Virus record (IMG/VR): IMGVR_UViG_3300032315_001715
Span: 62,001-126,000 of that record
Direction: 5' to 3' (one strand)
Length of the DNA stretch: 64,000 nt
This document shows, in pieces, positions 3,828 to 50,036 of this stretch (position 1 is the stretch's first letter; each line of letters starts with the position of its first letter). The notes below the pieces were generated by a model. That model made no database searches, was not told the DNA's origin, and worked only from the letters and a program-made list of their open reading frames with translations. The position numbers and the translations under genes are program-made.

Positions 3828-3918
3828 GTTACATGGTCTCCTGGATGTGGTATGGGATATTTAGCATGCCAGCCCATCTGATGGGATATTTATCGCTACC
3901 CCAGGTCAACCATCAAAG

Positions 3919-5683: not shown

Positions 5684-5953
5684 TCACGCCCATTTCATCA
5701 GGAATGCGATCTTGTGCTCTTGGCTGGGAAATTCAATGTAGCCGTCAATGCCAAATGTTGTCACTCCGCCAAAGCTGGCTATCTCCTCGTTGACACGCGC
5801 ATCGGCAATGGGCCTGGCCATGGAATCACCCTCCGTGTCATTGAGATCGTCCCAGGCCCGATCAAGCAGATTGGAATAAGCAGGATGGCATTCTCGGCCG
5901 CCGTTTTCCAGCCGACGATACAGCGGGAGCGTGTTATCGCACCCGCTGCTCAT
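5684..5953 (-). CDS. small protein of the F..D/E...F...W paralog family
   Basis: C-terminus IEFPSQEHKIAFLMKWA. Confidence 0.55.
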   Translation of the reverse strand: MSSGCDNTLPLYRRLENGGRECHPAYSNLLDRAWDDLNDTEGDSMARPIADARVNEEIASFGGVTTFGIDGYIEFPSQEHKIAFLMKWA

Positions 5954-5963
5954 CGGTCCACCA

Positions 5964-29661: not shown

Positions 29662-30492
29662 TCATACCTCTAGGACTATTGGTGTCCAGTTGTCGTTTTC
29701 TCCACGATATCCCTTGGCGTTGCAAACATAAGTTGTCGGTCCAATGCTCGCCATATCGCGTTGGTGAGTGTGTCCATAGATCCAGTATCGGATCTTTGGA
29801 TCCACGATGCTTTCCATGCGAGTGTTGGCAAAGCTACCATGCAGCAGGGTCCAAACTCGATCATGCGGGCGTTGCCATAGGAAACGTCGATTTGGGATGT
29901 GGTGGGTGACCGCCACCACCGGACCTTCTATCATTGGTATTTGATCACGGATATATTCCCAATCACGCACCCCAGCATCAAATGGTTTGAGATGGTCAGG
30001 TTGTATCAGTCCACGCTGCCATGGGATCGTGCGATCATTTAATACTTCGTACCAAACTTTAATCTGATCCTCGGTGCTATAGGGATCACCCGCACGGTAG
30101 TCGTGCCATCCGGTAGCACCGACAAAGGTCACTCCGTCGATCACCACCTTGTTGCGATGGAGGAAGGTGATACCATTGGTATCACTCCACCTCTGGTAGT
30201 GGTCAAGCATCTCGGGCATGTCGTGTGGATACGGCCATTTCTCCTCAAACTCTCGATCATAAACGCGGGTTTGGTGGAAACCAAGATTGTAAAAATCATG
30301 GTTTCCTGCCACCCAAACGACGTTAGTGAATCGTTGCTTGGCTAGAATCAGCCATCGGCTGGCTTCTCTAACATCGTTGCTGATGTCTCCGGCTACTACC
30401 AATGTGTTTACATCAGGGTCCATGTTTTCCAGGCACTCCCAGTCCCAGCGATTCAAATCGACGTGAATGTCTGATACCAGTGCGAATTTCAT
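29662..30492 (-). CDS. calcineurin-like metallophosphoesterase
   Basis: SDIH, AGDI, AGNHD, THH, GHTH motifs. Confidence 0.92.
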   Translation of the reverse strand: MKFALVSDIHVDLNRWDWECLENMDPDVNTLVVAGDISNDVREASRWLILAKQRFTNVVWVAGNHDFYNLGFHQTRVYDREFEEKWPYPHDMPEMLDHYQRWSDTNGITFLHRNKVVIDGVTFVGATGWHDYRAGDPYSTEDQIKVWYEVLNDRTIPWQRGLIQPDHLKPFDAGVRDWEYIRDQIPMIEGPVVAVTHHIPNRRFLWQRPHDRVWTLLHGSFANTRMESIVDPKIRYWIYGHTHQRDMASIGPTTYVCNAKGYRGENDNWTPIVLEV

Positions 30493-30551
30493 TCTACATG
30501 CTCCCTATGCAGCTATAGAATAGCACACCGCCAACATCGGGTCAACTTGAT

Positions 30552-31103
30552 TTACATTCTCCAAAAAACATGGGAACCCAAACGAATCTTCCGGGCCCTT
30601 GGTGCCCATCCCGGAACCAATCCGTGATGATGGAAATATGTTGATCCATTTGCGGTATCTGGTAATCGTCCGAGATACACATCTAGTGCTATTTCCTGCA
30701 TCTTGATCCAAGCATCATCCTCTCGGCGCCAACGCGGGCCTCGAACTATGCCTGCCCAACTAAACTGATACTGGCGGCGACCACCTGCCCATCCGTATTG
30801 GAACACGTTGGTGCAGATGTTTGATGAAAAGGCTGGATTGCCCATTCGATTAATTGGTACCCAAGCCACAGCGATCTGCTCGGCTCGGACGCCCCCTCGG
30901 GCTTCAAAATATAGATTCCATGCCAAGCACTCGAGATCGCGCTGCGCAGGTTCCTCTAACACAAGTGCCTCTGGGATGGTCAGTGGCAGGTGGTGCCGCA
31001 GGCTTGGGACCGCTCGATAATCAGCTCGAACATCCACTGGTTGTGCCTGAGCGACTCCTGTCATTAATACCCATAACACCGTGACAAGATATCTGACTCG
31101 CAT
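30552..31103 (-). CDS. SleB-like cell wall hydrolase (Hydrolase_2)
   Basis: CLAWNLYFEARG, INR, QFSW, GSTYFH, LGSHVF. Confidence 0.9.
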   Translation of the reverse strand: MRVRYLVTVLWVLMTGVAQAQPVDVRADYRAVPSLRHHLPLTIPEALVLEEPAQRDLECLAWNLYFEARGGVRAEQIAVAWVPINRMGNPAFSSNICTNVFQYGWAGGRRQYQFSWAGIVRGPRWRREDDAWIKMQEIALDVYLGRLPDTANGSTYFHHHGLVPGWAPRARKIRLGSHVFWRM

Positions 31104-31352
31104 TATCCTATGCTCTCCTTTTCTTAGTTTTATAGGCTCAGGAACGTTTATGTCAACGTATATGATCTAAGCCATTGATCGATAAGAATCTTATCCATCA
31201 AGAACGCCGGTTTTCACCACGAATTGGCGCGATATGATATTTAGAACTGACTGCGGTTATATAACACACAACAGAACTTAGGGCAGGCGAATGTGTCACC
31301 TACCCTGATAGTAGACATAACTATATATACGCAAAAAGATCGAACAGCAACC

Positions 31353-31802
31353 TTAATCCAAATATAGGCCACTATTAGCTGGATGTTTCATGACCTCGAC
31401 GGTTCGCACGGATACCCGAGATTCTAGATCTCTCTCGCACAACCAGCCCCGCACGCGGTGCCATATCGTCTCGGCAAATCGCTCCATCCCGACACCTGAC
31501 ATGATTCTTAGGTCAATTACTCCGTAGGAGTGAAGGCGCTGAAAATCAGTTAATCTAGGGTCGTCCTCAGCAATACATGTCGTATGGCTAAATGTTTCCT
31601 TGAGCCACGAATCGATTTCTTCCATATCATCCAGATCCAATGCTCGACCCGTTTCATCGAGCATGGTCACCGCAAGCACTATCTTAACATGCAAAGAATA
31701 ACCGTGCAGAAATCTAGCCTTGGATTTTGCTTTCCAATTGCGCCAAGCACACGTAAGTCCTGCGTTATGATCGTAGGTTTTGGTGGTAATATATTTTCCC
31801 AT
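31353..31802 (-). CDS. 6-pyruvoyl-tetrahydropterin synthase / QueD-like protein
   Basis: CAWRNW..LHGYS, LDETGRALD, FSHT, GMERFAE. Confidence 0.75.
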   Translation of the reverse strand: MGKYITTKTYDHNAGLTCAWRNWKAKSKARFLHGYSLHVKIVLAVTMLDETGRALDLDDMEEIDSWLKETFSHTTCIAEDDPRLTDFQRLHSYGVIDLRIMSGVGMERFAETIWHRVRGWLCERDLESRVSVRTVEVMKHPANSGLYLD

Positions 31803-31874
31803 GTTGATCTCCCTTTGCGTTATTAAACCGATGTCTTGACCTATAATCAATATAGCAAGCATACTCGTCATACC

Positions 31875-32101
31875 ATGGATAAAAATTGAAAGATACGATT
31901 GAGCTCGGAGAAAAGCTCAGCAACAAGCTGATAGCCTGCGTCACTGAGCTAAATTTACTGTTGCAGGAGGCAAACAACATCGGTCTCCATGTGATTCTTC
32001 AGAAAGACGAAATTTATGTCAAAGACGTACCGCTGCCAAAGATTTCGATCAAGAAATCGACATATCGAATCGAATACATCGACGCTGTTAAACCCGATTG
32101 A
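31875..32101 (+). CDS. hypothetical protein
   Basis: Short ORF divergent from the queD-like gene; start uncertain. Confidence 0.4.
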
Positions 32102-32456
32102 TCAACAACTATGGAATGATTATGTGTCTGGGCAACTGCGATTACCGGATAACAGTCGGTCTTCGCCTCCGGTACAAAAGCCGATATACCTGAAAAAGAG
32201 CCTAGATCTGCATGGAATGACCGTACAGCAAGCCTACCATCGTACCGAGGAATTCATTGGATCGCATCATCGGCTTGGGACCAAACAGGTTGTTATAATC
32301 TGCGGCAAGGGTGGTAGGATAGCATACGAGCTACCGCTATGGTGCAACCGATTTGGACAGATATCCAAGATCATACCAATCGTCGACAGCCGAGGTGAAC
32401 ACGGGTCGTATCGAATCGTGTTGAAAGTTAAAAATATCCGAGATTTTCCTGCATAA
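32016..32456 (+). CDS. stand-alone Smr-domain protein
   Basis: DQQLW, SLDLHGMTVQQAY, VIICGKG, GEHGSY.IVLK; true start probably downstream of 32016. Confidence 0.8.
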   Translation: MSKTYRCQRFRSRNRHIESNTSTLLNPIDQQLWNDYVSGQLRLPDNSRSSPPVQKPIYLKKSLDLHGMTVQQAYHRTEEFIGSHHRLGTKQVVIICGKGGRIAYELPLWCNRFGQISKIIPIVDSRGEHGSYRIVLKVKNIRDFPA

Positions 32457-32545
32457 TACCAGGTATGCAGATTTTTCCCAATTCTATGTTGCAGTGCAGC
32501 ATAGAATTCTATAAATAGTATGTAAGAAGAATAGGGGAAGATGAA

Positions 32546-32701
32546 ATGTGTCGGATTAAACAATACATGCGCAAATGGTGGGAAAACTTTACCATGAGCG
32601 ATGACGAGCGCTATCTCAGCAACTCACGCGACGCTGCTGATTTCGAACGGCGTCTTTATACCCTGATTCATCGAAAAAATACAAACCTAACAGGAGCATG
32701 A
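32546..32701 (+). CDS. DUF3563-like small protein (absent from the ORF track)
   Basis: TATAAATA at 32510-32517; ERYLSNSRDAADFERR motif. Confidence 0.6.
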   Translation: MCRIKQYMRKWWENFTMSDDERYLSNSRDAADFERRLYTLIHRKNTNLTGA

Positions 32702-32898
32702 AAATGGAAACCAACTACAAGAGCCTCGCCGAAGCAATGATCAACTACACCGTCGATACCAACAAGCAGATGTACGAGTTTGGCACCAAGATGGTCAAGG
32801 AATACGCCGAATTCAACAAGAGCATGATGAAGTTTGTGCCCGGCATGGAAGCTTGGGAAAAGCTGATACCGGTTGTTAACAACAACAGCAAGAAGTAA
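32698..32898 (+). CDS. small helical protein (phasin-like)
   Basis: GGAG RBS, strong codon bias, followed by a terminator. Confidence 0.5.
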   Translation: MKMETNYKSLAEAMINYTVDTNKQMYEFGTKMVKEYAEFNKSMMKFVPGMEAWEKLIPVVNNNSKK

Positions 32899-32900
32899 GA

Positions 32901-32925
32901 AAAGGGAGCGTTAAGCTCCCTTTTT
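32901..32925. terminator. bidirectional intrinsic terminator
   Basis: AAAGGGAGC-GTTAA-GCTCCCTTTT between convergent genes. Confidence 0.75.
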
Positions 32926-33290
32926 CATGGTCGGTTTTGTTCTCGTTCCTGCTGTTCTTTTGCCCAGTTATATTCGTTAATTTCAGCCTGGGTTTCCTCT
33001 TTGGTTTGCCAGCGATTTTTCTCCCAGTTCCAGTGCCGCGAATCATAGATCTTCACATCGAACATGAACCCAAGCAGGGTGACATCGAGCTCGGGCCCCT
33101 GATGGTCCTGACCCCACCATCGCAGATCAATGTTGAGATCCAGGATATCCCGTGCCTCAGATCGGCTGAGCAGGATCTCGAAATTCTTGTTCTCGGAAAG
33201 CTTTACATTCTTCCAATAATAGTTTTTGTCGGTGAAATCCTCTTGAGGAGAGAACCACGGATTATCAATCTGAAATTTGAAAAAGATCAT
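32925..33290 (-). CDS. hypothetical protein
   Basis: 121 aa; DHQGP..IYDSRHWNW. Confidence 0.6.
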   Translation of the reverse strand: MIFFKFQIDNPWFSPQEDFTDKNYYWKNVKLSENKNFEILLSRSEARDILDLNIDLRWWGQDHQGPELDVTLLGFMFDVKIYDSRHWNWEKNRWQTKEETQAEINEYNWAKEQQEREQNRP

Positions 33291-33670
33291 CGCTCCATCT
33301 CCTTGAGATAGTTCCTATACTTTTCACCAAAAAATCTAGTGCCCTTGAGTGGCTTCATGGTAGGCTTGGCACACCTACCGCCCCAGTTGGGGCACAGACC
33401 TGCACCGGTGGGCATGGTGGGCCAACAACCTGTTTTTTGTGCTACCCTGTGCAATCGTAGGGTATTATTCAGATGCCTTTGGGCATGTGCCTTGGTGAGG
33501 AACGGACCTTCTGGAGCAAAGCCATAATCCCAACCCTCGGGGTCACCATTTGAATGCCACCACCAGCCCTCACGATGGAAGTTGCTGGTCAACGGGAAGT
33601 CCCGCAGACTTCCTCTAACTATCCTATACATCTTCTTCCTCTTCGCAATCCTCATTGCCATATTCGGCAT
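33287..33670 (-). CDS. hypothetical protein
   Basis: Coupled to neighbours. Confidence 0.5.
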   Translation of the reverse strand: MPNMAMRIAKRKKMYRIVRGSLRDFPLTSNFHREGWWWHSNGDPEGWDYGFAPEGPFLTKAHAQRHLNNTLRLHRVAQKTGCWPTMPTGAGLCPNWGGRCAKPTMKPLKGTRFFGEKYRNYLKEMER

Positions 33671-33884
33671 CTCGTGCAGCCATGACCTTGTTCATAGCTG
33701 CCATGAGCACACGGTATGGCTCGTATTCCTGGCTCTGGCTGCCTTCGTTGCTGCCTGGTATCCAGCTCTTGCGGGTGATCTCCATAAAGGTAATAGCCTG
33801 TGCATGATGATTCTCCAAAGAAAATGGGTGCTGACGTTTCCATCAGCACCCACGAAGTTATAGCACGTTTCTTATCGTTGTCAA

Positions 33885-35300
33885 TCAGGCCGTGACGGCC
33901 TGATAGCGCTCACCCATGATGGTCTCAAGCATGATGTCTCGCGGCGTGAAGTTCTCTGCCGCCAGGATGCTCTTCATGATGCTCGGGCTGAACCCGCTCA
34001 CCATTGCCGTGCCGCGCTGATCGAAGCGCACTGGGCTGTTGCCGGTGGCATCCGGGCGGGCATTGAGATTCCACCACACCAGCTTGGGCAGCTCGTATCC
34101 AGCCGCCTCGAACATGCGCTGGGCAAGATCAAACGCACCCAGGCTTGCACCGCCGGCCCAGGCCGCGTTGAACTCCATGTCGCTCAACACCAGGAGGTAC
34201 CGAGGCATCTGATCAGCCGGCACGCGATTCTGCACCGCCACCTGCAGGATGCTGCGGAACGCGCTCTCCAGGTTGGTGTCGTAACCAACGTTGCGACGCA
34301 CCTGGTTGATCTTGGCTAGCAGGTCTCCCTTGAGCACGTCAATGTGGCTGTCACGGGTGAACGTCAGCCACATGTCCTTGAACGCACCCTGCTGCTTGTC
34401 GGCAACATACAGACCGAGGCTGATTGCCACGTCCATGCAGGTAAGACCTGCACCCGCCTGTCCGCCAACCGGGCAGCTCATGCTACCGCTGACATCCACC
34501 ATCGGAAGGATGGCATCATCACCGAGATAGTTCGGCAGTGCCTCCCACTGCGCCAGTGCCACAGCACGGTCACCATGTGCAACTGCCTTGATGACGTCGT
34601 ACGGATAAAGCACACCGGCGTTGACCTTGCTTGTGCCGTCCTTGAGACCCTCCTTCCAAGCCGCGTAGCGGGTGGCATCGCGCTTGTTGAAGGCCTTCTG
34701 ATAGCGGTTGGCAGCCACGCTAGGAACGTGATCGTAGTTGATCTGATCCCAGGTCTTGGCGCACATCTGCGTCTCAACAACCTTGGTGAGGTCAACGACG
34801 AGTCGGCGGTACTGCTTGGGAGTGAAGTTCAGGTACTTGCGCAGCTCGTTGGCTACCTCGCCCTTGCGGGGCATCCACTTGGCAGCAAGACCGTTACCGC
34901 CACGCAGGGCGCGTGCGATCAGGTCATATGCCGCCATCTTGACCTGCGGCGTCTTGAACTCGAGGAGGTCGTCCCAGCGACCGTACTCGGGTACCAGCGC
35001 AAGATTGCGCATGAGGCTCTCCGGATGGCTGACCTCCAGGTTACGAACGATCTTGCGGAAGGTCTCACGCTCGCCAGCACCGCCGCGAACGTCGCGCGCC
35101 CAGAATAGGATCTTCATGGCCACAGCCGGCTCGGCCGCATATGCACGGGCAAATGCGCCGGTGAGATCCTTGCCGCGGCTGGAACCGATGGCGAAGAACA
35201 GATCCACGTTAGGGTCAAGGCTGCTTTGATTGGTTGCCATGCCGTTGGCAGTAAGGCTCGGCTGCATGGTATTCTGTAGTGCCTGTGCGAAAGTGACCAT
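33885..35300 (-). CDS. DUF2828-family Ro60/TROVE-like protein with a C-terminal vWA domain
   Basis: Start MVTFAQ after a GAGGAG RBS; TANG, DLFF, RDVRGGAGER, YGRWDDL, AAKWMPR, VPSVA, MIDAS DVSGSM, SDMEF, WNL, VSGFS. Confidence 0.85.
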   Translation of the reverse strand: MVTFAQALQNTMQPSLTANGMATNQSSLDPNVDLFFAIGSSRGKDLTGAFARAYAAEPAVAMKILFWARDVRGGAGERETFRKIVRNLEVSHPESLMRNLALVPEYGRWDDLLEFKTPQVKMAAYDLIARALRGGNGLAAKWMPRKGEVANELRKYLNFTPKQYRRLVVDLTKVVETQMCAKTWDQINYDHVPSVAANRYQKAFNKRDATRYAAWKEGLKDGTSKVNAGVLYPYDVIKAVAHGDRAVALAQWEALPNYLGDDAILPMVDVSGSMSCPVGGQAGAGLTCMDVAISLGLYVADKQQGAFKDMWLTFTRDSHIDVLKGDLLAKINQVRRNVGYDTNLESAFRSILQVAVQNRVPADQMPRYLLVLSDMEFNAAWAGGASLGAFDLAQRMFEAAGYELPKLVWWNLNARPDATGNSPVRFDQRGTAMVSGFSPSIMKSILAAENFTPRDIMLETIMGERYQAVTA

Positions 35301-35322
35301 TTCTATTCTCCTCATCTGTGTC

Positions 35323-35375
35323 AGGTTGAACTTGGTTTGTTTGATAAAAACAATTGGTGTTGCGGAACTCAACCT
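35323..35375 (-). ncRNA. Y-RNA-like element A (5' leader hairpin of the TROVE-like gene)
   Basis: AGGTTGAGTTCCGCAAC...AAGTTCAACCT closing stem with a variant CCGCAA motif. Confidence 0.6.
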
Positions 35376-35386
35376 ATAAAGTGTAC

Positions 35387-35470
35387 GGAATCGAATGGTG
35401 GGTTTGAACCATCCTCACAATGCCCCGCGAAGGGCGTCGCTTCAACCGAAGTAGTTGCTGAACCGATTCC
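35387..35470 (-). ncRNA. Y-RNA-like element B
   Basis: GGAATCGGTTCAGCAAC...TCGATTCC closing stem; internal T-loop-like TGGTTCAAACCCA. Confidence 0.65.
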
Positions 35471-35490
35471 TTGAACTCTTGATCTAATGC

Positions 35491-35622
35491 TGGATCAACT
35501 TTTGTGGATCGCTGCCTTTACCATTTGGCTATCCCCCTTCGGTTGGTAGGGGGAGTTGGACTTGAACCAACAGTGGCTTTCGCCGGCGATTTTACCTTCC
35601 AGTTTGTTGCTGAACTGATCCA
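35491..35622 (-). ncRNA. Y-RNA-like element C: circularly permuted tRNA (Tyr/Leu-like, long variable arm)
   Basis: TGGATCAGTTCAGCAA..GTAAA ATCGC, variable arm, GTTGG TTCAAGT CCAAC, TCCCCCT A CCA, linker ACCGA, AGGGGGA TA GCC AAATGGTAAA GGC A GCGAT..AGTTGATCCA; own promoter TTGACA-17-TAACAT at 35631-35659. Confidence 0.85.
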
Positions 35623-35725
35623 TTAAATCTATGTTATGCTAGTTTTTAGCTCTTGTCAACGACTAATTTGCGCTGTAATCAACTTTCTTATTTCTAATAA
35701 CTTGCATTTACATTATAATTCGACA

Positions 35726-35845
35726 GGATCACCTTTACGTTGCTCTACCTCTGAGCTACACCCCCATAGTAAATTGTGGCGGGGATGGCAAGGAATTGAA
35801 CCTGCGACCTACGGCTTGACATGCGTTTAATTGCTGAACTGATCC
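35726..35845 (-). ncRNA. Y-RNA-like element D: circularly permuted tRNA-Asp(GTC)-like
   Basis: GGATCAGTTCAGCAA..T GTC AA GCCGT AGGTC GCAGG TTCAATT CCTTGC CATCCCC G CCA, 11-nt linker, GGGGGTG TA GCTC AGAGGTA GAGC A ACG..TGATCC; promoter TTGACT-17-TAATAT at 35855-35883. Confidence 0.85.
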
Positions 35846-35961
35846 ATTAACGTAATATTAGTGCAAATATCTCATCTAGTCAATGCGTATTTTGGCTAAA
35901 TATTGTGTGCAGTTCGCGGGCCGGAATCCCCAACTGCTCTATAACCGATAGGAGTCACAGC

Positions 35962-36621
35962 ATGACTATGTACCATAGAATACCATCAGGTTTCTACATT
36001 TATGCGTATATTCGAAATCAAACATCTACACAAGGACAGAAAGGAACTCCCTATTATATCGGAAAGGGAAAAGGATATAGAGCATACGTGGATCATAAGA
36101 ATATTCCTGTTCCAAAAGACTTTGATTACATAGTCATTATGGAAGAGAACTTAACTGAATTAGGGGCACTTGCGTTAGAGCGTCGATACATACGGTGGTA
36201 CGGAAAAATAAGTGATGGCTCTGGCATACTTCGAAACATGAATGACGGAGGAACAGGAGGATCCCATAGCTTACAATCTCGCCAAAAGATTTCAGAGTCG
36301 GCCAAAAGTCGACCTACCATGCCACAACATGTTCGAGAAAAACTGAGCAAATCGTTAATAGGTCGTAAATTATCCGATGAACACCGGAGAAAGATAAAAG
36401 AAAGCGCCAGCCGCAAGCTTACGGGCCCCAGATCTTTAGAAATCCGTAAAAAAATACAAGATGCTGCGCTTCGCAGAGGTCCAGTGTCAGAAGACACAAA
36501 AAAGAAACAAAGCGATGCAAATAAGGGCCAATATTGGTGGACAAATGGGGTAAAAGATATACGGTCTCATATAAATCCGGGAAAGTGTTGGCGACGGGGG
36601 AGAACATTCTCTACCAACTGA
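35962..36621 (+). mobile_element. free-standing GIY-YIG-like homing endonuclease with NUMOD3 repeats
   Basis: [34 protein letters not shown]...R.KIS repeats; TAAATA at 35897-35902 and a leader hairpin. Confidence 0.85.
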
Positions 36622-36701
36622 GCTACCGTCCCATATCAGAGGAACGGATCGGATTCGAACCGATGACCTGTAGGTTGAATGTTAGTTGCTGAACTAATCC
36701 C
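36596..36701 (-). ncRNA. Y-RNA-like element E: circularly permuted tRNA, 3' end overlapped by the endonuclease gene
   Basis: GGGATTAGTTCAGCAAC..TTC AA CCTAC AGGTC ATCGG TTCGAAT CCGAT CCGTTCC T, short linker, GGGACGG TA GCTC AGTTGGTA GAG; promoter TTGACA-17-TATTAT at 36710-36738. Confidence 0.8.
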
Positions 36702-36766
36702 TTGCCTTGATAATACGATCGATCAGTGATCGTGTCAACGGAAAAGATCAAATGTCCTGCATAAAT

Positions 36767-37480
36767 ATGCGCATGTTCGATTTCATAAGATTGCTGGAGT
36801 TATCCGGAATAAAATTCCTCCTCGAGGATCTAACGCCTGGGCAGGCCCGTGGCATTTTCAAGCAATATGGTGCTAATGACGCTGATCTCTCGCCCGATAA
36901 AATCCGAGCAACCTGGATAAAATTGGTCAGACAGATGCATCCTGACAAGACCGGCGGTGATCACCAACCACTTGCCATGATAAATGCGGCGTATGATGTG
37001 CTCAAAGCTCCGGCATCTGCTACGGTGGCCAAGGATGATCGAGGATTTCCGGCCTGGCAAACGGATCAGCGATCAACAAGAAATGACATTGCAACTAATG
37101 ACTACACCGACGTGAATTTCTTCAAGAAGCGCATGTGGGAGCTCAGTGGTAAGAGCCAGGAGAAATGGACCATCTATGCGTTTGATGGCACGTTCTTCCG
37201 CGGCATGGTAACCGTGTTCGGCAGCTCGCGAATTTTCAGAGACATGGCAAAGGCCATGGTAATACATAATAGCCGCGGTGGTAATCCACATCAAACCAGA
37301 GCAGTGTTTGTGCAAGATGATACCGATCCGGATATAATACTGATATGGCTAGACGGCAATGAAATCAGCCCGCCGATACCTATGGAACATGAAAGTCGCA
37401 ATAGGAACCCAGCAAATGATCTCGGATTCACAAGTCGGTTGTCCAAAGTATTGAATCAGATATCGTCAGGTCGAGATTAA
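36767..37480 (+). CDS. J-domain (DnaJ-like) protein, late-expressed
   Basis: IRATWIKLVRQMHPDKTGG..MINAAYDVLK; TAAATA at 36762-36767. Confidence 0.8.
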   Translation: MRMFDFIRLLELSGIKFLLEDLTPGQARGIFKQYGANDADLSPDKIRATWIKLVRQMHPDKTGGDHQPLAMINAAYDVLKAPASATVAKDDRGFPAWQTDQRSTRNDIATNDYTDVNFFKKRMWELSGKSQEKWTIYAFDGTFFRGMVTVFGSSRIFRDMAKAMVIHNSRGGNPHQTRAVFVQDDTDPDIILIWLDGNEISPPIPMEHESRNRNPANDLGFTSRLSKVLNQISSGRD

Positions 37481-37485
37481 TGCAG

Positions 37486-37917
37486 TCAGTTCCAAGCGTT
37501 ACAACAGCCCTTGGCATCGACCTTTCCGCCTAGATCAAATGTATCCGGAATCTTGTCGTCAAGCATGACAAACAATCCACAGGATCCATTTTCAAACCAT
37601 CCGCAGTTTTCGCAGCGAACATTGGCTTCAACATAGCCAGATGCCTCGGGTGTGACAATATCCTGAATGGGCTGATCATCGTGTGGCACACCTTGCAGAT
37701 AAAGTCCGCAACTGCCATTGGCTTTGACCACGTCATCCTTACCGAATATACCACAGCGTTGTTTGCCGGGCATGAATAGCTGGCAGGTACTGCATTGTGC
37801 GAAATTCTCAGATTTTGCCGGGGTAGGTTCCATGTATAGGAACGCCCACCTTCCTATCTTACCTCCACGTTTGTAGGTAGATTTTTCTAGGAGGTTAATA
37901 AGTTTGCGCATGTCCAT
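37486..37917 (-). CDS. Cys-rich protein with two HiPIP-like repeats
   Basis: CSTCQLF..C..GSC and CENCGWF..C..GCCNAW; N-terminus MDMRKLINLLE; TAAATA at 37922-37927. Confidence 0.65.
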   Translation of the reverse strand: MDMRKLINLLEKSTYKRGGKIGRWAFLYMEPTPAKSENFAQCSTCQLFMPGKQRCGIFGKDDVVKANGSCGLYLQGVPHDDQPIQDIVTPEASGYVEANVRCENCGWFENGSCGLFVMLDDKIPDTFDLGGKVDAKGCCNAWN

Positions 37918-37930
37918 GAGCTATTTAACA

Positions 37931-37968
37931 GCAAAAGGGCATGCACCCATCGATGCATGCCCTTTTGC
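37931..37968 (-). terminator. intrinsic terminator ending the H-G-F RNA cluster
   Basis: GCAAAAGGGCATGCA...TGCATGCCCTTTTGC inverted repeat. Confidence 0.75.
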
Positions 37969-37977
37969 TTTTTTACA

Positions 37978-38217
37978 GGATGGTTTGTGGTTCGCTTTTT
38001 ATTTCTTTCTGGCAGATTATCTTATCCATATCGCCCAGAGCTGGATTCAAAGTCCAGTTACCGATATGGTCCCACCTTCTGCCCTAGCTTGATTTCTTCC
38101 AAGCAATATCTTGCCTCGTGCAAGACCGATCCTGGCTAAGCCCAGGCAGCCTCGATGACTAATGGACCTAGGATCCAGTCGTCGCCGTTGGGTCGAAGTA
38201 TGCTGCTGTACCCATCC
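37978..38217 (-). ncRNA. Y-RNA-like element F (240 nt, multi-hairpin)
   Basis: GGATGGGTACAGCAGC...AAACCATCC closing stem; several internal hairpins including CTGGA-CTTTGAA-TCCAG. Confidence 0.7.
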
Positions 38218-38233
38218 ATTGATAAATGCCCTC

Positions 38234-38324
38234 AGGAACGTTTTGCCCTTGTTTAGCCAGGCTGGGCTCCTGGTTTTGCTACAAACGTAGCTTCCTGATT
38301 TTAAGGTGTTGCTGCACCGTTCCT
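38234..38324 (-). ncRNA. Y-RNA-like element G
   Basis: AGGAACGGTGCAGCAAC...AAAACGTTCCT closing stem; internal hairpins GCTAC/GTAGC and CCAGG/CCTGG. Confidence 0.7.
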
Positions 38325-38356
38325 TATGGTATTCTCAAATTTCTAAACAACAAAGC

Positions 38357-38409
38357 GGGAAAGCTTTTGGTTTGCGTACAAAGCAATTTTTGTTTGCTGC
38401 ATGTTTCCC
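38357..38409 (-). ncRNA. Y-RNA-like element H
   Basis: GGGAAACATGCAGCAA...TTTCCC; promoter TTGACA-17-TACATT at 38418-38446. Confidence 0.65.
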
Positions 38410-38429
38410 TTGCACGTAATGTATGTGAT

Positions 38430-39275
38430 CTAGGTCACAGTGTCAATCGCTAATCCATGGGATTTTTGAACAAATCCAACTAGCTGATCAGCAAAGATGT
38501 CCACTGCCTCCTTGGTCGGATGGTTGGTCCTAGTCATCATGGACTTTTTGATCGTCGGTAACCAACCTGTAAATATTGGATGATCAGTTGTGCTCCATAC
38601 CGGTAACCAATGAGATTGGTCAATGGTTGAATAAATCATCCTTGGTAGATATGCACCATTTGGTCTTGGCATGGGATGCAAGCTATTCCAAAACACATAT
38701 TTCACACCGATTGAATCTAGAAAAAACTGCAAGGTCAGCACTGACCTCAGCAGTTGATTGGCCAACCATGTCGGAGTTGCACAGGTGACAAATGCCTTGC
38801 TAAACTCTCGGTGACGTTCATAAAATTCATGTAGATATTGCATGCGATCATTATCATACATCGAAGTTTGTTTGATAAGGTCGTTGATATTAAACGGATT
38901 GAAGGTCATCGCTGCGTGCGAATTCACTTCATCAAATATCATTATACGTGCTGGCTCGGTCCAGCCAATAAATGCCATCCATTCGGTTGGATCGCCACCC
39001 GAATCCATCATCGCCTTGAAAAATGCAATGGTATCATATGCTATTACGTCGTTGTTGTTGCCATTTCGGGCCTTGTTAACCACTTCCGTAGAACCCATTA
39101 ACGCATGTACGCGCCCTGATAGATTAACTTTCTGCAGATCGTGCCAGTAGTTGCTGCCCAGGATTCGACTTTCCTCGGTGAGCCTGGGATTCTTGTTGTA
39201 ATCCCAGGCTACATCAAGACCATGAACAAACGAACATCCGTTGAAAAATAATCGAGATGGCATTTGGTCGATCAT
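38430..39275 (-). CDS. SGNH-hydrolase-like protein
   Basis: FFNGCSFVHG, N.A..G, GWT...R, HPT motifs. Confidence 0.7.
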   Translation of the reverse strand: MIDQMPSRLFFNGCSFVHGLDVAWDYNKNPRLTEESRILGSNYWHDLQKVNLSGRVHALMGSTEVVNKARNGNNNDVIAYDTIAFFKAMMDSGGDPTEWMAFIGWTEPARIMIFDEVNSHAAMTFNPFNINDLIKQTSMYDNDRMQYLHEFYERHREFSKAFVTCATPTWLANQLLRSVLTLQFFLDSIGVKYVFWNSLHPMPRPNGAYLPRMIYSTIDQSHWLPVWSTTDHPIFTGWLPTIKKSMMTRTNHPTKEAVDIFADQLVGFVQKSHGLAIDTVT

Positions 39276-39919
39276 AGCACCGTTGACTTTTCATGTCCAA
39301 CACGTATTGTTGGATCTATCCAAATTTCGTGTCCATTCTCCTGGGCAGTCCAACAGAATCCAACGTCCTCGGCGCAAAAATCATGGAATCTTTCATTGCT
39401 GACCCATCTCGGCCGGAACCAAGGGTATTCCATTTGTTCGATGACACCGGCCTTGATGGCAACAAATCCAAATCCAGTATAACTAACTCTGAATGGCTGC
39501 GATCTAAATGCCATTTCGTTGCGATCCATGAACTTAAATACCCCGTGATCAGCAAGATGAGAGAAATCTAGATTTTCCACCACCGGATAATGTTGATTGT
39601 CGGACATGATATATGTGCCACCGGTGATGGGCTTGTCGCTGGAGATCAGCTTGAGAACATCATCTGGTGACCATACCATATCCGAATCGATCCATATCAT
39701 CTGATCGTAGGGTAGTTTCCCTTGCCACGGCAGTTGGGAACGTCCGGCGGTATTCTGGCCGCCTAATATTCGATTTCTAGCATAATACACCACCGGATCA
39801 TATCCCATGCTGTATGCGTAACTGATACCTCGAGCGCTCAATTCGGCAATGGTTGAATTCCACGAGTTGAAATAGTTGGAGCTAAATGTGCGCCCAGGAA
39901 GGCAGAATATTAATTTCAT
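39272..39919 (-). CDS. GT-A fold glycosyltransferase
   Basis: ARNRI, WIDSD, GFGFVAIK, EDVGFC, VGHEK. Confidence 0.85.
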   Translation of the reverse strand: MKLIFCLPGRTFSSNYFNSWNSTIAELSARGISYAYSMGYDPVVYYARNRILGGQNTAGRSQLPWQGKLPYDQMIWIDSDMVWSPDDVLKLISSDKPITGGTYIMSDNQHYPVVENLDFSHLADHGVFKFMDRNEMAFRSQPFRVSYTGFGFVAIKAGVIEQMEYPWFRPRWVSNERFHDFCAEDVGFCWTAQENGHEIWIDPTIRVGHEKSTVL

Positions 39920-40641
39920 ACCATTTTGCTCCTAACCAGATCATCCAATGCAGGTGCGGCCGTTTCGATTGAATCGTAAAAGACCTCATGAAACAAATCG
40001 CCGTCAATGCTGTTACACGGTTCAAGATTGTTGAGTATCTTGAAAGCAGGGCAGTTTGTCATCAATGCATTGATGTTGATCACCTGTCCGCTGGTACCGA
40101 TCATCACCACCACATCTCGGCTAGATAGCCGCTTGAACGCTCGATAGAGATCAGCATACCTCGGGGCAGAATCGTTGAAAAATACCACGCCGGGCTTTAC
40201 ACCCTTGGAACTATTGCACTTCGGGCATCTATCGTTGTCAACCGACCAAGGTTCATATCCAACATCCCAAACATGCCCGCATGCGATGCACTTCATGTCC
40301 TGTAGATATCCGTGTAAATGGATGATATCATCGCACCCGGCACGTTCAAGTAGATCATCGACGTTTTGTGTCAACATGATGGATCTATCGGTGAAATCCT
40401 TCTTCCAATTTGAAAGGAGCCTGTGCCCGATCGTGGGTACAACCGAAGCTAGACTGGACCGCAGGGTGTTGTAAAATCCATGCACAACCTCCCGATAATC
40501 TCGCCATGTTAATGCGTTGCAAACCACGTCGACGTCGTAGCCGTTCCAGAGACCGTTTTGATCTCGAAAAGTTGCTACGCCGCTCGGGGCGCTGAGACCT
40601 GCCCCTGATATCACCACCAATGTCGGTAATCTATCGTCCAT
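39916..40641 (-). CDS. cobB: Sir2/CobB-family NAD-dependent deacylase
   Basis: SGAGLSAPSGVATFRD, TQNVDDL, HLHG, CxxC..CxxC, IGTSG. Confidence 0.9.
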   Translation of the reverse strand: MDDRLPTLVVISGAGLSAPSGVATFRDQNGLWNGYDVDVVCNALTWRDYREVVHGFYNTLRSSLASVVPTIGHRLLSNWKKDFTDRSIMLTQNVDDLLERAGCDDIIHLHGYLQDMKCIACGHVWDVGYEPWSVDNDRCPKCNSSKGVKPGVVFFNDSAPRYADLYRAFKRLSSRDVVVMIGTSGQVININALMTNCPAFKILNNLEPCNSIDGDLFHEVFYDSIETAAPALDDLVRSKMV

Positions 40642-40642
40642 C

Positions 40643-41413
40643 TCATGTTTTCCTTCTATACTCTGCCGAGTGATACCATTCTTTAACTTCGTCTAGATTC
40701 TCTATCAATAGCGACGGATCAGCATGCTGGTCAACCGTTTCCACGCGATATGGTTTAGAAAATCCGGGATAGATCCCGGATACCAATTCGTCAAATTGAA
40801 TTCGGATACCAATACCTCGTGAAATCAAATCTTCTTGTATCAGAATGGTCGACTGCATGCGCCAATACACCTTATGCATGGTATTGTAGTCAACCACAAC
40901 GGGCTCACTATCGTGTTGACCATCCGGGTTAGCATTGCTTCTAACCACCAGATAGCTGACCAACTGATCCCATGGGTTGCGTTGTACACACAGCCATTTG
41001 CATCCTTGCAGATCAAGCATGATGGACGGAATCTGAAAGATGTTGTCTGGCCACACCGTAACTGCCCATCTGGTTTGTATGTTCGATAGCTGTCTCCAGC
41101 GACGCAGGCGATCTAGAATCTTAACAGTGTGCTTGTAATCCTCAAGCAACGGGCGTTCCCTTGTCTGATTGCGATAATAGATTATGTCAGCAGGCGTCAT
41201 CCTTGATATCTTGCCATTCTCAAGACTGCTGGTCCTCGTATCAAAAAATTCACCAAATGCGTGATACCCAAACGATGCTAATATTGATGCTAGAAGCTTG
41301 GTACCAGATCTAGGAGATCCAAATATCACCAGTTTCTTGTGATCAAGTATCGAGGATTGTGTAACAGCGGTTCCTGCTTTGTCGTGGGAATTTATGTTGG
41401 ATAATTTTACCAT
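40643..41413 (-). CDS. sulfotransferase-like P-loop protein
   Basis: GSPRSGTKLL PAPS loop, GEFF, RNPWDQLVSY. Confidence 0.7.
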   Translation of the reverse strand: MVKLSNINSHDKAGTAVTQSSILDHKKLVIFGSPRSGTKLLASILASFGYHAFGEFFDTRTSSLENGKISRMTPADIIYYRNQTRERPLLEDYKHTVKILDRLRRWRQLSNIQTRWAVTVWPDNIFQIPSIMLDLQGCKWLCVQRNPWDQLVSYLVVRSNANPDGQHDSEPVVVDYNTMHKVYWRMQSTILIQEDLISRGIGIRIQFDELVSGIYPGFSKPYRVETVDQHADPSLLIENLDEVKEWYHSAEYRRKT

Positions 41414-41497
41414 TTCGGCACCTAAGTATGTTTAGATTTAATCTATTTTCCTAAATTTGTTTTAGACTGTTCCGTATCTAGGCTTGAAGGTAACCAC

Positions 41498-41899
41498 CTA
41501 TTCGACCGTGTTCGAATTAATGATAACACCGTTGCTTGTCAACGGCACATATGGGCAATAGTATGCAGCGACATCAATTGTTGGTGTCCAAATCTTCTCA
41601 TCGAAGGTCAGAATATACGATACCTTATCTTCCTCGGTTTCTGTGTATGTGTACCACCTAGGTATCATGTAATTAACGTTTGGTAGTGGTTCTGGCTGCA
41701 CCACGACCCGTCCTAAACATCTAGTCTTCCATGCTGCAAATTCTGATGTTTCCTTTCCATTGGCATCAAACACACCCCGTCGTACCGACAGCTTGTGCCA
41801 TCCGTCAACTGATTCTAAACGAGGTATATGTTTCTCAGGTGTGGTGCTATCCACAGACACCGTCAGTTGTTGGGTTAATGCGCCGATGTTGCTCGCCAT
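41498..41899 (-). CDS. hypothetical protein ending in a major-capsid-like motif
   Basis: C-terminal DVAAYYCPYVPLTSNGVII. Confidence 0.55.
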   Translation of the reverse strand: MASNIGALTQQLTVSVDSTTPEKHIPRLESVDGWHKLSVRRGVFDANGKETSEFAAWKTRCLGRVVVQPEPLPNVNYMIPRWYTYTETEEDKVSYILTFDEKIWTPTIDVAAYYCPYVPLTSNGVIINSNTVE

Positions 41900-42600
41900 G
41901 GGAATCCCCCTGGGTACCGTTGGTGCATCACAGCATTACCCTGCAGAAAGAAACTGGCATTAACAGAGGTCGGATTACCATCCAATCTGTAACAAATGGT
42001 TGCATGGCCTGTGCAGCCAAAGTTCGGAACGTGGTGTGATATTGCTGCATAAAATCGTCGATCTCCTCCCCATCCACTGTACCAGGCAGACGCCATCATC
42101 ACAATGGTTTCGCGCCGTATGCAATATGTAGAGGTATCGACTAGATGATGCTGATCACTGAGATAGATTGGGAATCTACCTAGGCTTTCGCAGTCGTCAT
42201 CACAGATGTAGTTACCATCTGCATCGTATATTTTGCGCAGGCTATGACACCATGACCACCCATTGGTCTCACAGGCATTAATCATAATTGCGATGTGATC
42301 GGATTCAAACCAGTTATCCTGATCCAGAGCAACCCAGTAATCTTGCTCCATTAGGGCAGCGCTCATGAAATAAATCCGATGCCCGTACCATCCATTTGCT
42401 CCCACATTCCATGGTAGGACCATGTGCTTAACGGACGGAAACTCGTCAAGTATCAATTTAGTACGATCCAGGAATTCCGGACCGTCGATCACCACTAAAC
42501 ATGTGATGTTTTCGTGTGTTTGGTTGAGGACACTTGCGATAGCGGTTCTGAGAGTGGGAGACCCGGTTGTGGGAATCACCACCAGTGCTGACTTTACCAT
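41875..42600 (-). CDS. glycosyltransferase family 2
   Basis: VVIPT, SVLNQT, VVIDG, LDQDN, DRRF. Confidence 0.88.
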   Translation of the reverse strand: MVKSALVVIPTTGSPTLRTAIASVLNQTHENITCLVVIDGPEFLDRTKLILDEFPSVKHMVLPWNVGANGWYGHRIYFMSAALMEQDYWVALDQDNWFESDHIAIMINACETNGWSWCHSLRKIYDADGNYICDDDCESLGRFPIYLSDQHHLVDTSTYCIRRETIVMMASAWYSGWGGDRRFYAAISHHVPNFGCTGHATICYRLDGNPTSVNASFFLQGNAVMHQRYPGGFPWRATSAH

Positions 42601-42639
42601 CACTAATTATGCACAGAATCACCACTACAAGTCACGAAT

Positions 42640-48896: not shown

Positions 48897-49730
48897 TTGA
48901 GAATCATTGAATTGGCTAGAAACATCATCAAGGAATCATTTACCGACATCAGCGTTGTTAAACTTGGCATCGGTGCATTGGTAAATCAGGCAGATGCCGA
49001 TCTAGGTGATGAAGCCGCGGCCGCCATAGACGCATTTGTTGGGGTTCCCCACGATGCGATAAAAAAAGGATATACATTTGGAATCATGCATTCCAGACCG
49101 CTTGAAGACGCATATTCTTCCAATCCAAGTCCCCGAGGAATCAAAATGCGTCAGCAGTTGGATTCGGCATTTGCTCCTATAAAGTCGGCATTGAAGTCTA
49201 AGTTTGGCAATGTTATGACGTTGTATCGAGGCCAAGAGAGCATTGATAATGAGAAAACGGAAAGAACCACACTTAGCTGGACATCCGATCCCCGAATTGC
49301 TGCCACGTTCGCCGGTATCGAACCGTGGGAAATGAAGCTGAAGCCCATTACCGATGAACAAATACAATCCGCATTGGACACATATGCCAAAACAGGAGAG
49401 GTTAAATTCCTCAGGAACCGATACGTTCGCACGGACACTCCGACTGATGAGGAAGGAAAGGACGAATTCTATTACGACATATATGACAATCACGACGATC
49501 TACTAACCGACGGCGACGATCTTGAGAATGAATTCAAGGATCATCAGAGATACCATCAGGAATTGATAGATAAACGGGCTCGAAAACTTACAAAGGTGGT
49601 CAGGGCTGAAATACCAGTTGATGACATCATCTGGATAACCGATCGCGCGGGACAAAGCGAATTCATCCTGCACAATCGGCCTGGTGCTCGAGGTTACATT
49701 GATGCTAAAGGAAAGCTGATAAAAGGATAG
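48897..49730 (+). CDS. putative ADP-ribosyltransferase-fold protein, late-expressed
   Basis: TLYRG, LSWTSD..A..FA, QSEFI (R-S-E pattern); N-terminus MRIIELARNIIKES; TAAATA at 48850-48855. Confidence 0.55.
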   Translation: MRIIELARNIIKESFTDISVVKLGIGALVNQADADLGDEAAAAIDAFVGVPHDAIKKGYTFGIMHSRPLEDAYSSNPSPRGIKMRQQLDSAFAPIKSALKSKFGNVMTLYRGQESIDNEKTERTTLSWTSDPRIAATFAGIEPWEMKLKPITDEQIQSALDTYAKTGEVKFLRNRYVRTDTPTDEEGKDEFYYDIYDNHDDLLTDGDDLENEFKDHQRYHQELIDKRARKLTKVVRAEIPVDDIIWITDRAGQSEFILHNRPGARGYIDAKGKLIKG

Positions 49731-49739
49731 GGCGGGATT

Positions 49740-50005
49740 TCTCCCGCCCCTTCTGTTTCTAGGCCTTCCTTGTGGCCCAATGGAATTACGCTGCTAGCAG
49801 CTCATTCTCAAATGCTGCGTTATCATTTGCTGCATTTACAATTTTCTTGCGTTAAGGTAGCTTGCGCACCGCAACCGCACTATTGCTAGATTCCTTTTGC
49901 CCTTAATGCTGCCAATCGATCCCAAATCCGGCCCATAAATGGTGGACCGGAGGAGAATTGAACTCCTGTCTTGTTCAGCTTATTTGGCTACAGTCAAACA
50001 GTTAC
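49740..50005 (-). ncRNA. ssrA: two-piece (circularly permuted) tmRNA
   Basis: GAC AGGAG TTCAATT CTCCT CCGGTCC A CCA, TTTAT linker, GGGCCGG (G3-U70); tag ORF 49786-49833 AANDNAAFENELLAA*; terminator hairpin ~49729-49750; ends approximate. Confidence 0.93.
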
Positions 50006-50036
50006 ATCTTTATTTATGCGAAATTCTCCTCAGTTG

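Follow-up and report, generated by a model that had tools for sequence, protein, structure and literature searches.

Which RNAs would a protein with the fold of Ro60 carry, if its sequence lies outside the known Ro families? This question is raised by a locus of a giant (very large) phage, contained in a stretch of 64,000 nucleotides (nt) of the IMG/VR record IMGVR_UViG_3300032315_001715 (positions 62,001 to 126,000), here called the window. In it, a gene for a DUF2828/DUF7788 protein (33885-35300, minus strand) is accompanied by eight RNA elements, A to H, that lie upstream of it on the same strand (35323-38409) and are free of open reading frames (ORFs) longer than about 60 amino acids (aa) in the ORF list of the window. 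Y RNAs are bound by Ro60 at their GGUCCGA or GNCGAA strand and lie on its outer surface, the ends of misfolded RNAs entering its central hole; the reading proposed here, which is considered fairly probable, is that the locus encodes a phage Ro60-like ribonucleoprotein system with a new class of Y-like RNA. Sequence comparison demonstrates that the "handle" module of the array recurs, with a covarying stem, beside other DUF2828 genes, and that it is conserved and specific to DUF2828 loci.

The protein has 471 aa, its ATG being at 35300 with the ribosome-binding site (RBS) GAGGAG upstream. It matches Pfam DUF2828 (E 1e-34) and DUF7788 (E 3e-39), as well as PHROG 850, "RNA-binding protein" (E 1.5e-144), and only those two Pfam families, with no match to TROVE (PF05731) or to the Ro60 vWA domain (PF25045). 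The positive control of this test, gp233 of mycobacteriophage McGee, scores 9e-50 for TROVE and 4e-54 for vWA_Ro60. In a profile search of the PDB the best sequence match is the Ro60 of Thermus phage phiLo, at the DxSxS segment of the MIDAS (metal-ion-dependent adhesion site); as this match is marginal, a comparison of folds was needed. The AlphaFold2 model, based on an alignment of 26 sequences (pLDDT 82, pTM 0.81), has a domain of alpha-helical HEAT repeats and, after it, a vWA domain in which the MIDAS site (DxSxS...T...D) is complete; the MIDAS residues D269, S271, S273, T342 and D374 are invariant in 26 homologues. An earlier prediction made from the letters of the window alone, referred to below as the original prediction, had taken the protein for a divergent Ro60, and the fold agrees with it: a Foldseek search of the PDB returns only two matches at E<=0.001, both of them full-length Ro60 proteins, namely phiLo Ro60 (9KOP; E 8e-10, TM score 0.53) and Rsr of D. 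radiodurans (2NVO; E 4e-7, TM score 0.49), and all remaining matches are to the vWA domain only. Identity to the solved Ro60 structures is 15-16%. The Ro60 fold, together with the failed TROVE sequence test, makes the protein a remote structural homologue of Ro60.

Homologues are found by tblastn in at least 704 phage records, with an identity of 48% or less. They include Felixounavirus, KVP40-like, Aeh1-like, GAP32-like jumbo, Sinorhizobium phiM12-like and Campylobacter phages, and also Bacillus phage Tsamsa, Listeria P100-like, Staphylococcus, Enterococcus and Fusobacterium phages and the mycobacteriophages of cluster L, whose homologue is annotated as "Ro-like RNA binding protein". Structural matches in BFVD extend to giant viruses (Pithovirus LCPAC304, TM score 0.88; Cafeteria roenbergensis virus; a choanoflagellate mimivirid; Marseillevirus), and Pfam DUF2828 has eukaryotic members too. 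In Pectobacterium phage CBB and Erwinia phage pEa_SNUABM_12 the homologue is labelled "structural protein", and the DUF2828 protein may be packaged in virions.

On the RNA side, the eight minus-strand elements of the original prediction are all present where it had placed them, and the closing stems are those that it had listed: AGGUUGA/UCAACCU in A, GGAAUCG/CGAUUCC in B, (U)GGAUCA/UGAUCC(A) in C, GGAUCA/UGAUCC in D, GGAUGG/CCAUCC in F, AGGAACG/CGUUCCU in G and GGGAAA/UUUCCC in H. Its further statement that each stem leaves the motif unpaired needs a qualification: single-sequence folds retain the closing stems, and part of the motif pairs locally in some folds of B, C and E. This local pairing has no support from covariation, because A16 and A18 of the module are invariant whatever stands opposite. 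For the same reason, the absence of covariation between the flanking columns and these two positions, a local hairpin presenting CAGC (AGUU/AACU) and a closed GNRA tetraloop (GCAA) were rejected. The motif by itself carries no weight, since CAGCAA is over-represented across the whole window. The 9-mer GTTCAGCAA has four copies in the 64 kb, all on the minus strand and within 1.3 kb (35455-36694). A loose scan for CNGCAR with any 6-bp closing stem within 300 nt was discarded as non-specific, as it matches all over the window and on both strands, and a stricter descriptor and a covariance model were used instead.

For the training of this covariance model, R1, elements A and H were combined with 15 short elements taken from other genomes. 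Run with filters off on 14 kb of the window (30-44 kb), the model recovers C, B, G and D, none of which belongs to the training set (E 0.0036-0.0071), together with the 5' part of E, and the next best match is noise (11 bits); in the full window, its matches are confined to 35.3-38.4 kb. The search was then extended to loci fetched from IMG/VR (56), annotated phages (15) and contigs of genomes and metagenome-assembled genomes (80), every one of them selected for containing a DUF2828 gene. With thresholds of E<=1, <=1 and <=0.5 in three match sets, R1 gives 17 + 80 + 57 = 154 matches, in a scope that comprises the window and about 130 further loci with DUF2828. Each of the 154 shares the strand of the DUF2828 gene, the opposite strand having none, and nearly all lie just downstream of the gene or at most 1-2 kb upstream; an element in leader position ends 15-25 nt ahead of the DUF2828 start codon in more than 20 loci. 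The scan thus finds a strong and specific enrichment of the module beside DUF2828 genes, as the original prediction had anticipated.

The module consists of a GG...CC closing stem of 6-8 bp, a G-poor single-stranded NWW-C(A/C/U)GCAA and an AA before the 3' strand. The consensus of the 5' closing strand is (A/G/U)-G-G-W-U-N-N, then K-U-W. Position by position, the motif counts are C in 76/77, A in 65 or C in 11, G in 77/77, C in 76, A in 77/77 and A in 72/76, so that columns C12, G14, C15, A16 and A18 are invariant or nearly so; variants with CUGCAA exist. A G-poor run follows the motif, and the invariant AA stands a few bases ahead of the complementary 3' strand. Among 76 distinct matches all seven stem pairs change on both sides, and 99.2% of the stem cells are paired, against 26-48% in controls with slid partners, in an alignment that is fitted to the model and hence favours pairing. 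The canonical Ro-binding motif (GGUCCGA / GNCGAAN0-1G) is absent from the 5' strand, where C(A/C/U)GCAA holds its position.

Searches with Rfam 15 at E<=10 gave no match to the module. The gathering score of the YrlA family (69) is not reached in the window, where D obtains 29 bits and E 24.9 bits over model positions 23-87 only, nor was there a YrlA match at gathering in 14 homologous phage loci. This threshold is strict for phage members, as a canonical RNA of McGee also scores just 36 bits. McGee served as the control of specificity, with its canonical Ro protein gp233 (Pfam TROVE and vWA_Ro60) and two upstream RNAs, one of them YrlA-like (the 36-bit Rfam match), which carry GCCGAG or GGCCGAAGG right after the closing strand. 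In 22 kb of this TROVE-Ro locus, R1 finds no match at E<=10. The contrast indicates two protein families with two RNA codes and one architecture.

The phages with R1 matches infect Proteobacteria, Firmicutes, Actinobacteria and Campylobacter, and the module recurs in phages of at least four bacterial phyla. Members of it are recognised by eye in phages whose protein is 31-39% identical. Examples of phages with the module are Listeria P100, Ralstonia RSP15, Campylobacter F368, Bacillus Tsamsa, a Staphylococcus phage, Enterococcus EfV12-phi1, Salmonella BPS17L1, E. coli Bas63 and Mycobacterium Faith1, the last with three elements just downstream of the gene. In P100 (locus L060, 3611-3927) a strong TTGACA-17(TG)-TATCAT promoter is followed by tandem elements at 3662-3717, 3750-3805 and 3820-3927, which lie in the 620-bp gap between the last transfer RNA (tRNA) gene and the DUF2828 gene, directly upstream of the latter. 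In Bas63 (L071; MZ501086.1, about 82072-82906) four unannotated elements with AGACCN...NGGUCU closing stems (5212-5278, 5379-5436, 5834-5901, 5921-6046) lie between tRNA genes downstream of gp130; bas63_0137, a small ORF annotated as "hypothetical" on the antisense strand, overlaps two of these elements and is probably spurious. Apart from the DUF2828 gene, no further neighbour travels with the module beyond close relatives, as judged by tblastn of nine neighbouring ORFs.

In the window, the elements differ in size and content. Element A (35323-35375, minus strand, 53 nt; R1 50 bits, a training member) has the motif CCGCAA and a small hairpin as cargo, and sits in the 5' untranslated region (UTR) of the protein gene, its end lying 10 nt ahead of the RBS. 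Element B (35387-35470, minus, 84 nt) carries GUU-CAGCAA and, in the fold, a UUCG hairpin and a T-arm-like hairpin; R1 finds it with exact boundaries (20.7 bits, E 0.004). Element C (35491-35622, minus, 132 nt; R1 20.9 bits, E 0.0036, same coordinates; fold z -2.7) has a permuted tRNA-like body in which a variable-arm hairpin is followed by the T arm, a 7-bp acceptor stem with ACCA, a loop closure and the D arm, the T and D arms being located by pattern. Its variable-arm hairpin (about 35575-35582, minus) reads GGCGAAAG and fits the canonical YrlA motif GNCGAAN0-1G letter for letter, which is probably a coincidence, since this sequence lies in the interior of C and forms a GNRA hairpin. Element D (35726-35845, minus, 120 nt) holds a YrlA-type tRNA-like cargo, with a T arm, a 7-bp acceptor stem then GCCA, a loop and a D arm; its Rfam YrlA match has an E of 0.0027, and R1 places it at 35725-35846 (19.6 bits, E 0.0071).

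Element E, whose closing stem the original prediction had described as degraded, is a gene split by an insertion. Its 5' part (36625-36701, minus; R1 E 0.02) comprises the stem strand GGGAUUA, GUU-CAGCAA, the T arm, the acceptor stem and the D arm up to GGUAGAG. The alignment to an intact orthologue in a related locus (L004:5518-5634) runs from the first base to 36625, inside the D arm, and a local alignment to the same orthologue reveals a 3' remnant of 26 nt at 35923-35948 (minus), made up of the last part of the D arm and of GAUUCC, a degenerate form of the closing strand. Between both parts lies a free-standing homing endonuclease gene on the opposite strand (35962-36621, plus; Pfam NUMOD3; PHROG 314, "homing endonuclease"; an N-terminus that looks GIY-YIG-like by eye), which interrupts the D arm of E and has a reading frame that enters the antisense of E; no endonuclease is found at the matching site of L004. 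The abrupt stop of similarity, the endonuclease, the remnant on its far side and the uninterrupted L004 copy together establish that E was split and has not diverged, and the homing endonuclease is an insertion that stands outside the RNA-protein system.

The three remaining elements are conserved together in a relative whose protein is 86% identical. Element F (37978-38217, minus, 240 nt; fold z -2.7), with the motif GUA-CAGCAG, has a large cargo of several hairpins, among them an anticodon-arm-like one (CUGGA-CUUUGAA-UCCAG); it is too long for R1 and carries CAGCAG, and the model gives no match to it. L004 keeps it as well, and there the two strands of an 8-bp helix in its interior have changed in a compensatory manner; an example of such changes is CCAUAUCG/CGAUAUGG in the window against CCACGUCG/CGAUGUGG in L004. 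Element G (38234-38324, minus, 91 nt; R1 19.8 bits, E 0.0063, same boundaries) has GUG-CAGCAA and a two-hairpin cargo, and is kept in L004 and in another related locus, L005. Element H (38357-38409, minus, 53 nt; R1 42 bits, a training member) has CAUG-CAGCAA and a hairpin with a 7-nt loop, UUUGUAC, and its stem covaries with those of L004 (GGGGAG/CUUCCC) and L005 (GGGAAG/CUUCCC).

The four TTGAC(A/T)-17-(-10) promoters of the original prediction are confirmed as sigma-70-type sequences with a TAnnnT -10 element, all on the minus strand, which end 8-10 nt before H (38418-38446, TTGACA-17-TACATT), E (36710-36738, TTGACA-17-TATTAT), D (35855-35883, TTGACT-17-TAATAT) and C (35631-35659, TTGACA-17-TAACAT). 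A strong, G+C-rich 16-bp hairpin after F (37930-37969), kept in L004, resembles a bidirectional terminator, and an intrinsic terminator follows the protein gene (33824-33853, minus). From these signals the predicted transcripts are H-G-F, E, D and C-B-A-mRNA. Transcription from the four promoters would begin exactly where H, E, D and C begin, and the polycistronic H-G-F and C-B-A-mRNA transcripts would be cut into single units.

What is enclosed by the module varies widely, and the idea that the elements display interchangeable cargo is upheld: the cargo swaps between elements, and C, D and E bear tRNA-like modules of the YrlA type. R1 misses F and the un-permuted topology described below, and those cases come from pattern scans and inspection. 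In the first type the order is handle 5' strand, CNGCAA, an optional variable arm, T arm, acceptor 3' strand, loop, acceptor 5' strand, D arm, AA and handle 3' strand. This is the YrlA layout, found in C, D and E, in elements of Faith1, S13, RSP15, Tsamsa and Bas63 and at many IMG/VR loci; permuted T and D arms are present in at least 20 elements from many loci, and N-CCA stands straight after the acceptor 3' strand in 8/14 type-1 elements, C and D included, by reading of the printed sequences. An un-permuted form of the same type is a tRNA of ordinary order with free acceptor ends and an encoded CCA, in which the hairpin handle replaces the anticodon arm. S13, Aeh1 and several Clostridia-associated contigs have this form, with nine cases on the strand of the gene and none opposite. 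Those of Cronobacter phage S13 (L001, 6895-7015 and 7025-7137) and Aeromonas phage Aeh1 (L063, 8151-8272 and near 8053) are annotated as "tRNA-Ser", "tRNA-OTHER" or "tRNA-Val" of 113-122 nt, and are rejected by ARAGORN. In the second type the handle takes the place of the acceptor stem, and the D, anticodon and T arms are kept (L021:888, L042:4248, L051:5626). Mini elements of 50-65 nt have a single hairpin, often with a 5-bp stem and a 7-nt CU-NNN-AA loop like that of an anticodon arm; hairpins resembling an anticodon stem-loop are found in 32/233 candidates, against 9.0 +/- 2.9 in shuffles. In the window, F and H carry anticodon-arm-like hairpins, B a T-arm-like hairpin and A and G other hairpins. 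No tRNA parts are present in A, G and H, and the anticodon arm is absent from C, D and E, where the closing module stands in its place.

Much of this design is shared with the Ro60 (Rsr)-YrlA/YrlB systems of bacteria (PMC4201824; RF02553). In both, a protein with HEAT and vWA domains, which at this locus is predicted to be of the ring type, is encoded beside small RNAs of the same strand, the RNA ends pair, a conserved motif lies on the 5' strand just inside the stem, a tRNA-like module is present (T arm, D arm and loop-closed acceptor-like stem; here in C, D and E), and several RNAs derive from one precursor, which at this locus is a prediction. The YrlA of M. smegmatis has a 7-bp acceptor stem, as C and D have, and is cut by RNase P and found with CCA in vivo while bound to Rsr (PMC4201824). 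The differences are in the protein, which is DUF2828 + DUF7788 instead of TROVE + vWA_Ro60; in the motif, C(A/C/U)GCAA with a 3' AA instead of GNCGAAN0-1G; in the Rfam score, which remains below the YrlA threshold, with only the tRNA-like core aligning; in the number of RNAs, eight at the window locus versus two in S. Typhimurium and likewise two in M. smegmatis (PMC4201824); and in the cargo, which at DUF2828 loci also includes tRNA bodies that keep the anticodon arm and bare anticodon-stem-loop mimics.

Among phage systems, the closest is that of Thermus phage phiLo (PMC12135203; 9KOP, 9L5Y), whose Ro60, the best structural match of the window protein, likewise has Y-like RNAs (Yrl1 and Yrl2) directly upstream of its gene. 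The phiLo protein forms a complex with its Yrl RNAs and the polynucleotide phosphorylase (PNPase) of the host (PMC12135203); unlike the window system, it belongs to the TROVE family, and its two RNAs have a CGAA motif, with no tRNA-like cargo described. A jumbo-phage survey also mentions ROT/TROVE proteins with a tRNA-like partner. Within the DUF2828 family, the window protein is 39% identical to gp130 of Bas63 (Felixounavirus JohannRWettstein) and about 32% identical to CKA15_055 of a Listeria phage. Bas63 gp130 counters the Ppl defence; its authors noted the likeness to Ro60, guessed at Y-RNA partners and proposed some annotated tRNAs for that part (PMC11482910), whereas the candidates found here are the unannotated elements between tRNA genes. 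CKA15_055 was detected by mass spectrometry in purified virions, and Y-RNA partners were guessed for it as well (PMC12282133). For both proteins a Ro60-like structure or HHpred match was noted by the authors, and neither study identified the RNAs (PMC11482910, PMC12282133). Highly transcribed unannotated regions are reported in CKA15 near the homologue gene (PMC12282133), and the P100 elements are plausibly among them, a link that is only suggestive, as the text of that paper gives no coordinates.

The window also contains a circularly permuted (two-piece) transfer-messenger RNA (tmRNA) at 49786-49999 (minus; ARAGORN span 49695-50033; Rfam tmRNA_permuted, 67.7 bits), with the tag peptide AANDNAAFENELLAA. 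Permuted tmRNA resembles the type-1 elements in its gene order (T arm, acceptor 3' strand, NCCA, short spacer, acceptor 5' strand) and differs from them in that the elements have neither a tag reading frame nor pseudoknots, and have the CNGCAA closing module instead. Its acceptor junction, ACCA-UUUA-U-GGG, is similar to the NCCA-UUUAY junctions of type-1 cargo in related loci, a likeness that hints at shared processing.

The proposed mechanism is that the DUF2828 protein would bind the stem-plus-CNGCAA module in the way Ro60 binds the GGUCCGA / GNCGAA strand of Y RNAs. Through the leader element A, the protein would also bind its own mRNA, as feedback control or for co-assembly. C and D, with their 7-bp acceptor stem and encoded NCCA, would be cut by RNase P in the acceptor loop, leaving a two-piece tRNA-like RNA held on the protein; by analogy with the M. 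smegmatis YrlA of the same stem length, which makes the same fate a reasonable prediction, C and D are probably opened in this way. The most speculative step is that the tRNA-like cargo would couple the ring to proteins that recognise tRNA (host exonucleases, processing enzymes or tRNA-targeting defence nucleases), so that the particle would protect phage translation or RNA, or would counter a defence. A function in tRNA/RNA surveillance or counter-defence early in infection is speculative, and is suggested by the linkage of the loci to tRNA arrays and, in some phages, to genes of an RNA ligase, RtcB or a CCA-adding enzyme, by the phiLo Ro60-Yrl-PNPase complex, by the Ppl phenotype of gp130 and by the presence of the Listeria homologue in virions. 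An elaboration that we hold to be unlikely is that the array is a library of mimics of tRNA parts (of anticodon arms, of elbows and of acceptor ends, some of them charged or bearing a CCA tail) on a Ro-like ring, possibly delivered by the virion together with the DNA, and that these mimics bait or jam tRNA-targeting immune nucleases of the host, or feed the sensing or repair of damaged tRNA.

Several points weigh against the proposal of a Ro60-like ribonucleoprotein. The TROVE sequence test failed, and a TM score of about 0.5 to Ro60 is a moderate match. Binding of RNA by the protein and transcription of the elements in this phage are inferred from sequence. Given that the loci were chosen for DUF2828, specificity rests on position, strand, one TROVE locus and the rest of the window. 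R1 has a match in just about half of the fetched loci, many of the negative ones having truncated flanks, the un-permuted topology or variants such as CUGCAA. The pair counts come from the model-fitted alignment mentioned above. Many members lie within tRNA gene clusters, and their co-location could partly reflect a shared region of RNA genes. Finally, the step to decoys or counter-defence is speculative, extrapolating from one preprint phenotype in a different phage.

Other explanations differ in how much of this evidence they can accommodate. The one that survives best, and which we regard as a serious though less probable possibility, accepts the ribonucleoprotein and assigns it a housekeeping role instead of counter-defence: Ro-type quality control and 3' trimming of phage tRNA/tmRNA precursors, with the Y-like RNAs gating the ring or tethering host exonucleases such as PNPase, as in the RYPER complex of Deinococcus. 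The linkage to tRNA arrays and to the RNA ligase, RtcB and CCA-adding enzyme genes of some phages suits such a role, as do the complex of phiLo Ro60 with its Yrl RNAs and host PNPase (PMC12135203) and the fact that the window phage encodes its own tmRNA, whereas the deletion phenotype of Bas63 gp130 is specific to defence, and the Listeria phage protein in purified virions suits a very early role, without proving one. Housekeeping and counter-defence roles are not mutually exclusive.

It is rather improbable, in our judgement, that the structured RNAs are real and act without the DUF2828 protein, either as tRNA-like decoys or small RNAs, the module being a processing or stability signal or a site for RNase P, the ribosome or an exonuclease, and its proximity to the gene reflecting a common region of tRNA and RNA metabolism. 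At many loci gene and elements are indeed inside tRNA arrays, in Felixounavirus phages the elements are interleaved with tRNAs, and the binding of protein to RNA in the Ro60-like reading is itself inferred. However, the association persists where no tRNA genes are nearby, as in the window and Faith1, and the leader element keeps its fixed distance from the DUF2828 start codon in the more than 20 loci mentioned. The motif, moreover, is invariant across hosts of four phyla with the DUF2828 protein as sole constant neighbour, and the architecture parallels that of Ro and Y RNA exactly, with a different motif at the canonical TROVE locus.

Much less likely still is a cis-regulatory role, in which the elements would be leaders together with duplicates of them: the protein, or some other factor, would bind A to control DUF2828 translation, and the other copies would be non-functional or attenuators. 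The place of A in the 5' UTR, so close to the RBS, and the leader being the most conserved position across loci fit this explanation; yet four elements have strong promoters of their own, H-G-F has a terminator of its own at a distance of 2.6 kb from the gene, in Faith1, Bas63, RSP15 and S13 the gene precedes the elements, and the cargo is both tRNA-like and conserved. In any case, control of the leader through A is compatible with the Ro60-like ribonucleoprotein. As for tRNA genes that have decayed or are circularly permuted, or inverted repeats that arose by chance and share no function, the permuted order of T arms, D arms and acceptor stems in C, D and E and the lack of any ARAGORN tRNA call in the window could suggest them, but this is scarcely credible and permuted tRNA genes are rejected, since C, D and E, having no anticodon arm, cannot decode, A, G and H share the module yet carry no tRNA parts, the matches on the two strands number 154 and 0, and covariation of the stem extends across phyla.

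As to the surroundings, three ORFs break up the array: the homing endonuclease gene, a 257-aa ORF (36707-37480, plus) with a weak, sub-threshold DnaJ match and a homologue in none of the fetched loci, and a Cys-rich ORF of 143 aa (37486-37917, minus) with several CxxC motifs and a weak HIPIP match, which is kept only in the closest relatives, L004-L007. The flanks (29662-33670 and 39272-42603) encode a metallophosphoesterase, a cell-wall hydrolase, a QueD-like 6-pyruvoyl-tetrahydropterin synthase and a Smr-domain protein (plus strand), and also a Sir2-family protein, a sulfotransferase and a glycosyltransferase. The genes adjoining the system of the window include no RNA ligase or RtcB gene.

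Ro60-Y RNA systems, the tRNA mimicry of YrlA and phage Ro60 proteins with Y-like RNAs are already known. In the literature on DUF2828, on Ro-like proteins and on Bas63 with Ro60 (the supplementary tables of Chen et al. 2014 being outside this scope) nothing was found beyond the two guesses at Y-RNA partners cited above. New here are a second family of Ro-type proteins, which has an RNA code of its own, together with arrays of unusual size and the grafting of handles onto tRNA in several circular permutations. The annotation of several phage records can be corrected, as their 113-122-nt "tRNA-Ser", "tRNA-Val" and "tRNA-OTHER" calls and small antisense ORFs are these RNAs. The building of the RNAs is unusually modular, a single handle, predicted to bind the protein, being set on tRNA scaffolds in at least three circular permutations. 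The Ro60-Y RNA principle is extended to a second family of proteins, whose RNA code is different, and candidate RNA partners are supplied for a widespread phage family already linked to escape from bacterial defence; their signature of sequence and structure makes the question of Y-RNA partners directly testable in laboratory phages, for instance Bas63 or relatives of Felix O1 with E. coli K-12 as host, or P100 with Listeria. If the array were indeed a library of tRNA mimics, the swapping of cargo cassettes would be a way by which phages track the defences of their hosts, and the DUF2828-family proteins of giant viruses and eukaryotes could use unrecognised RNA partners of like design.

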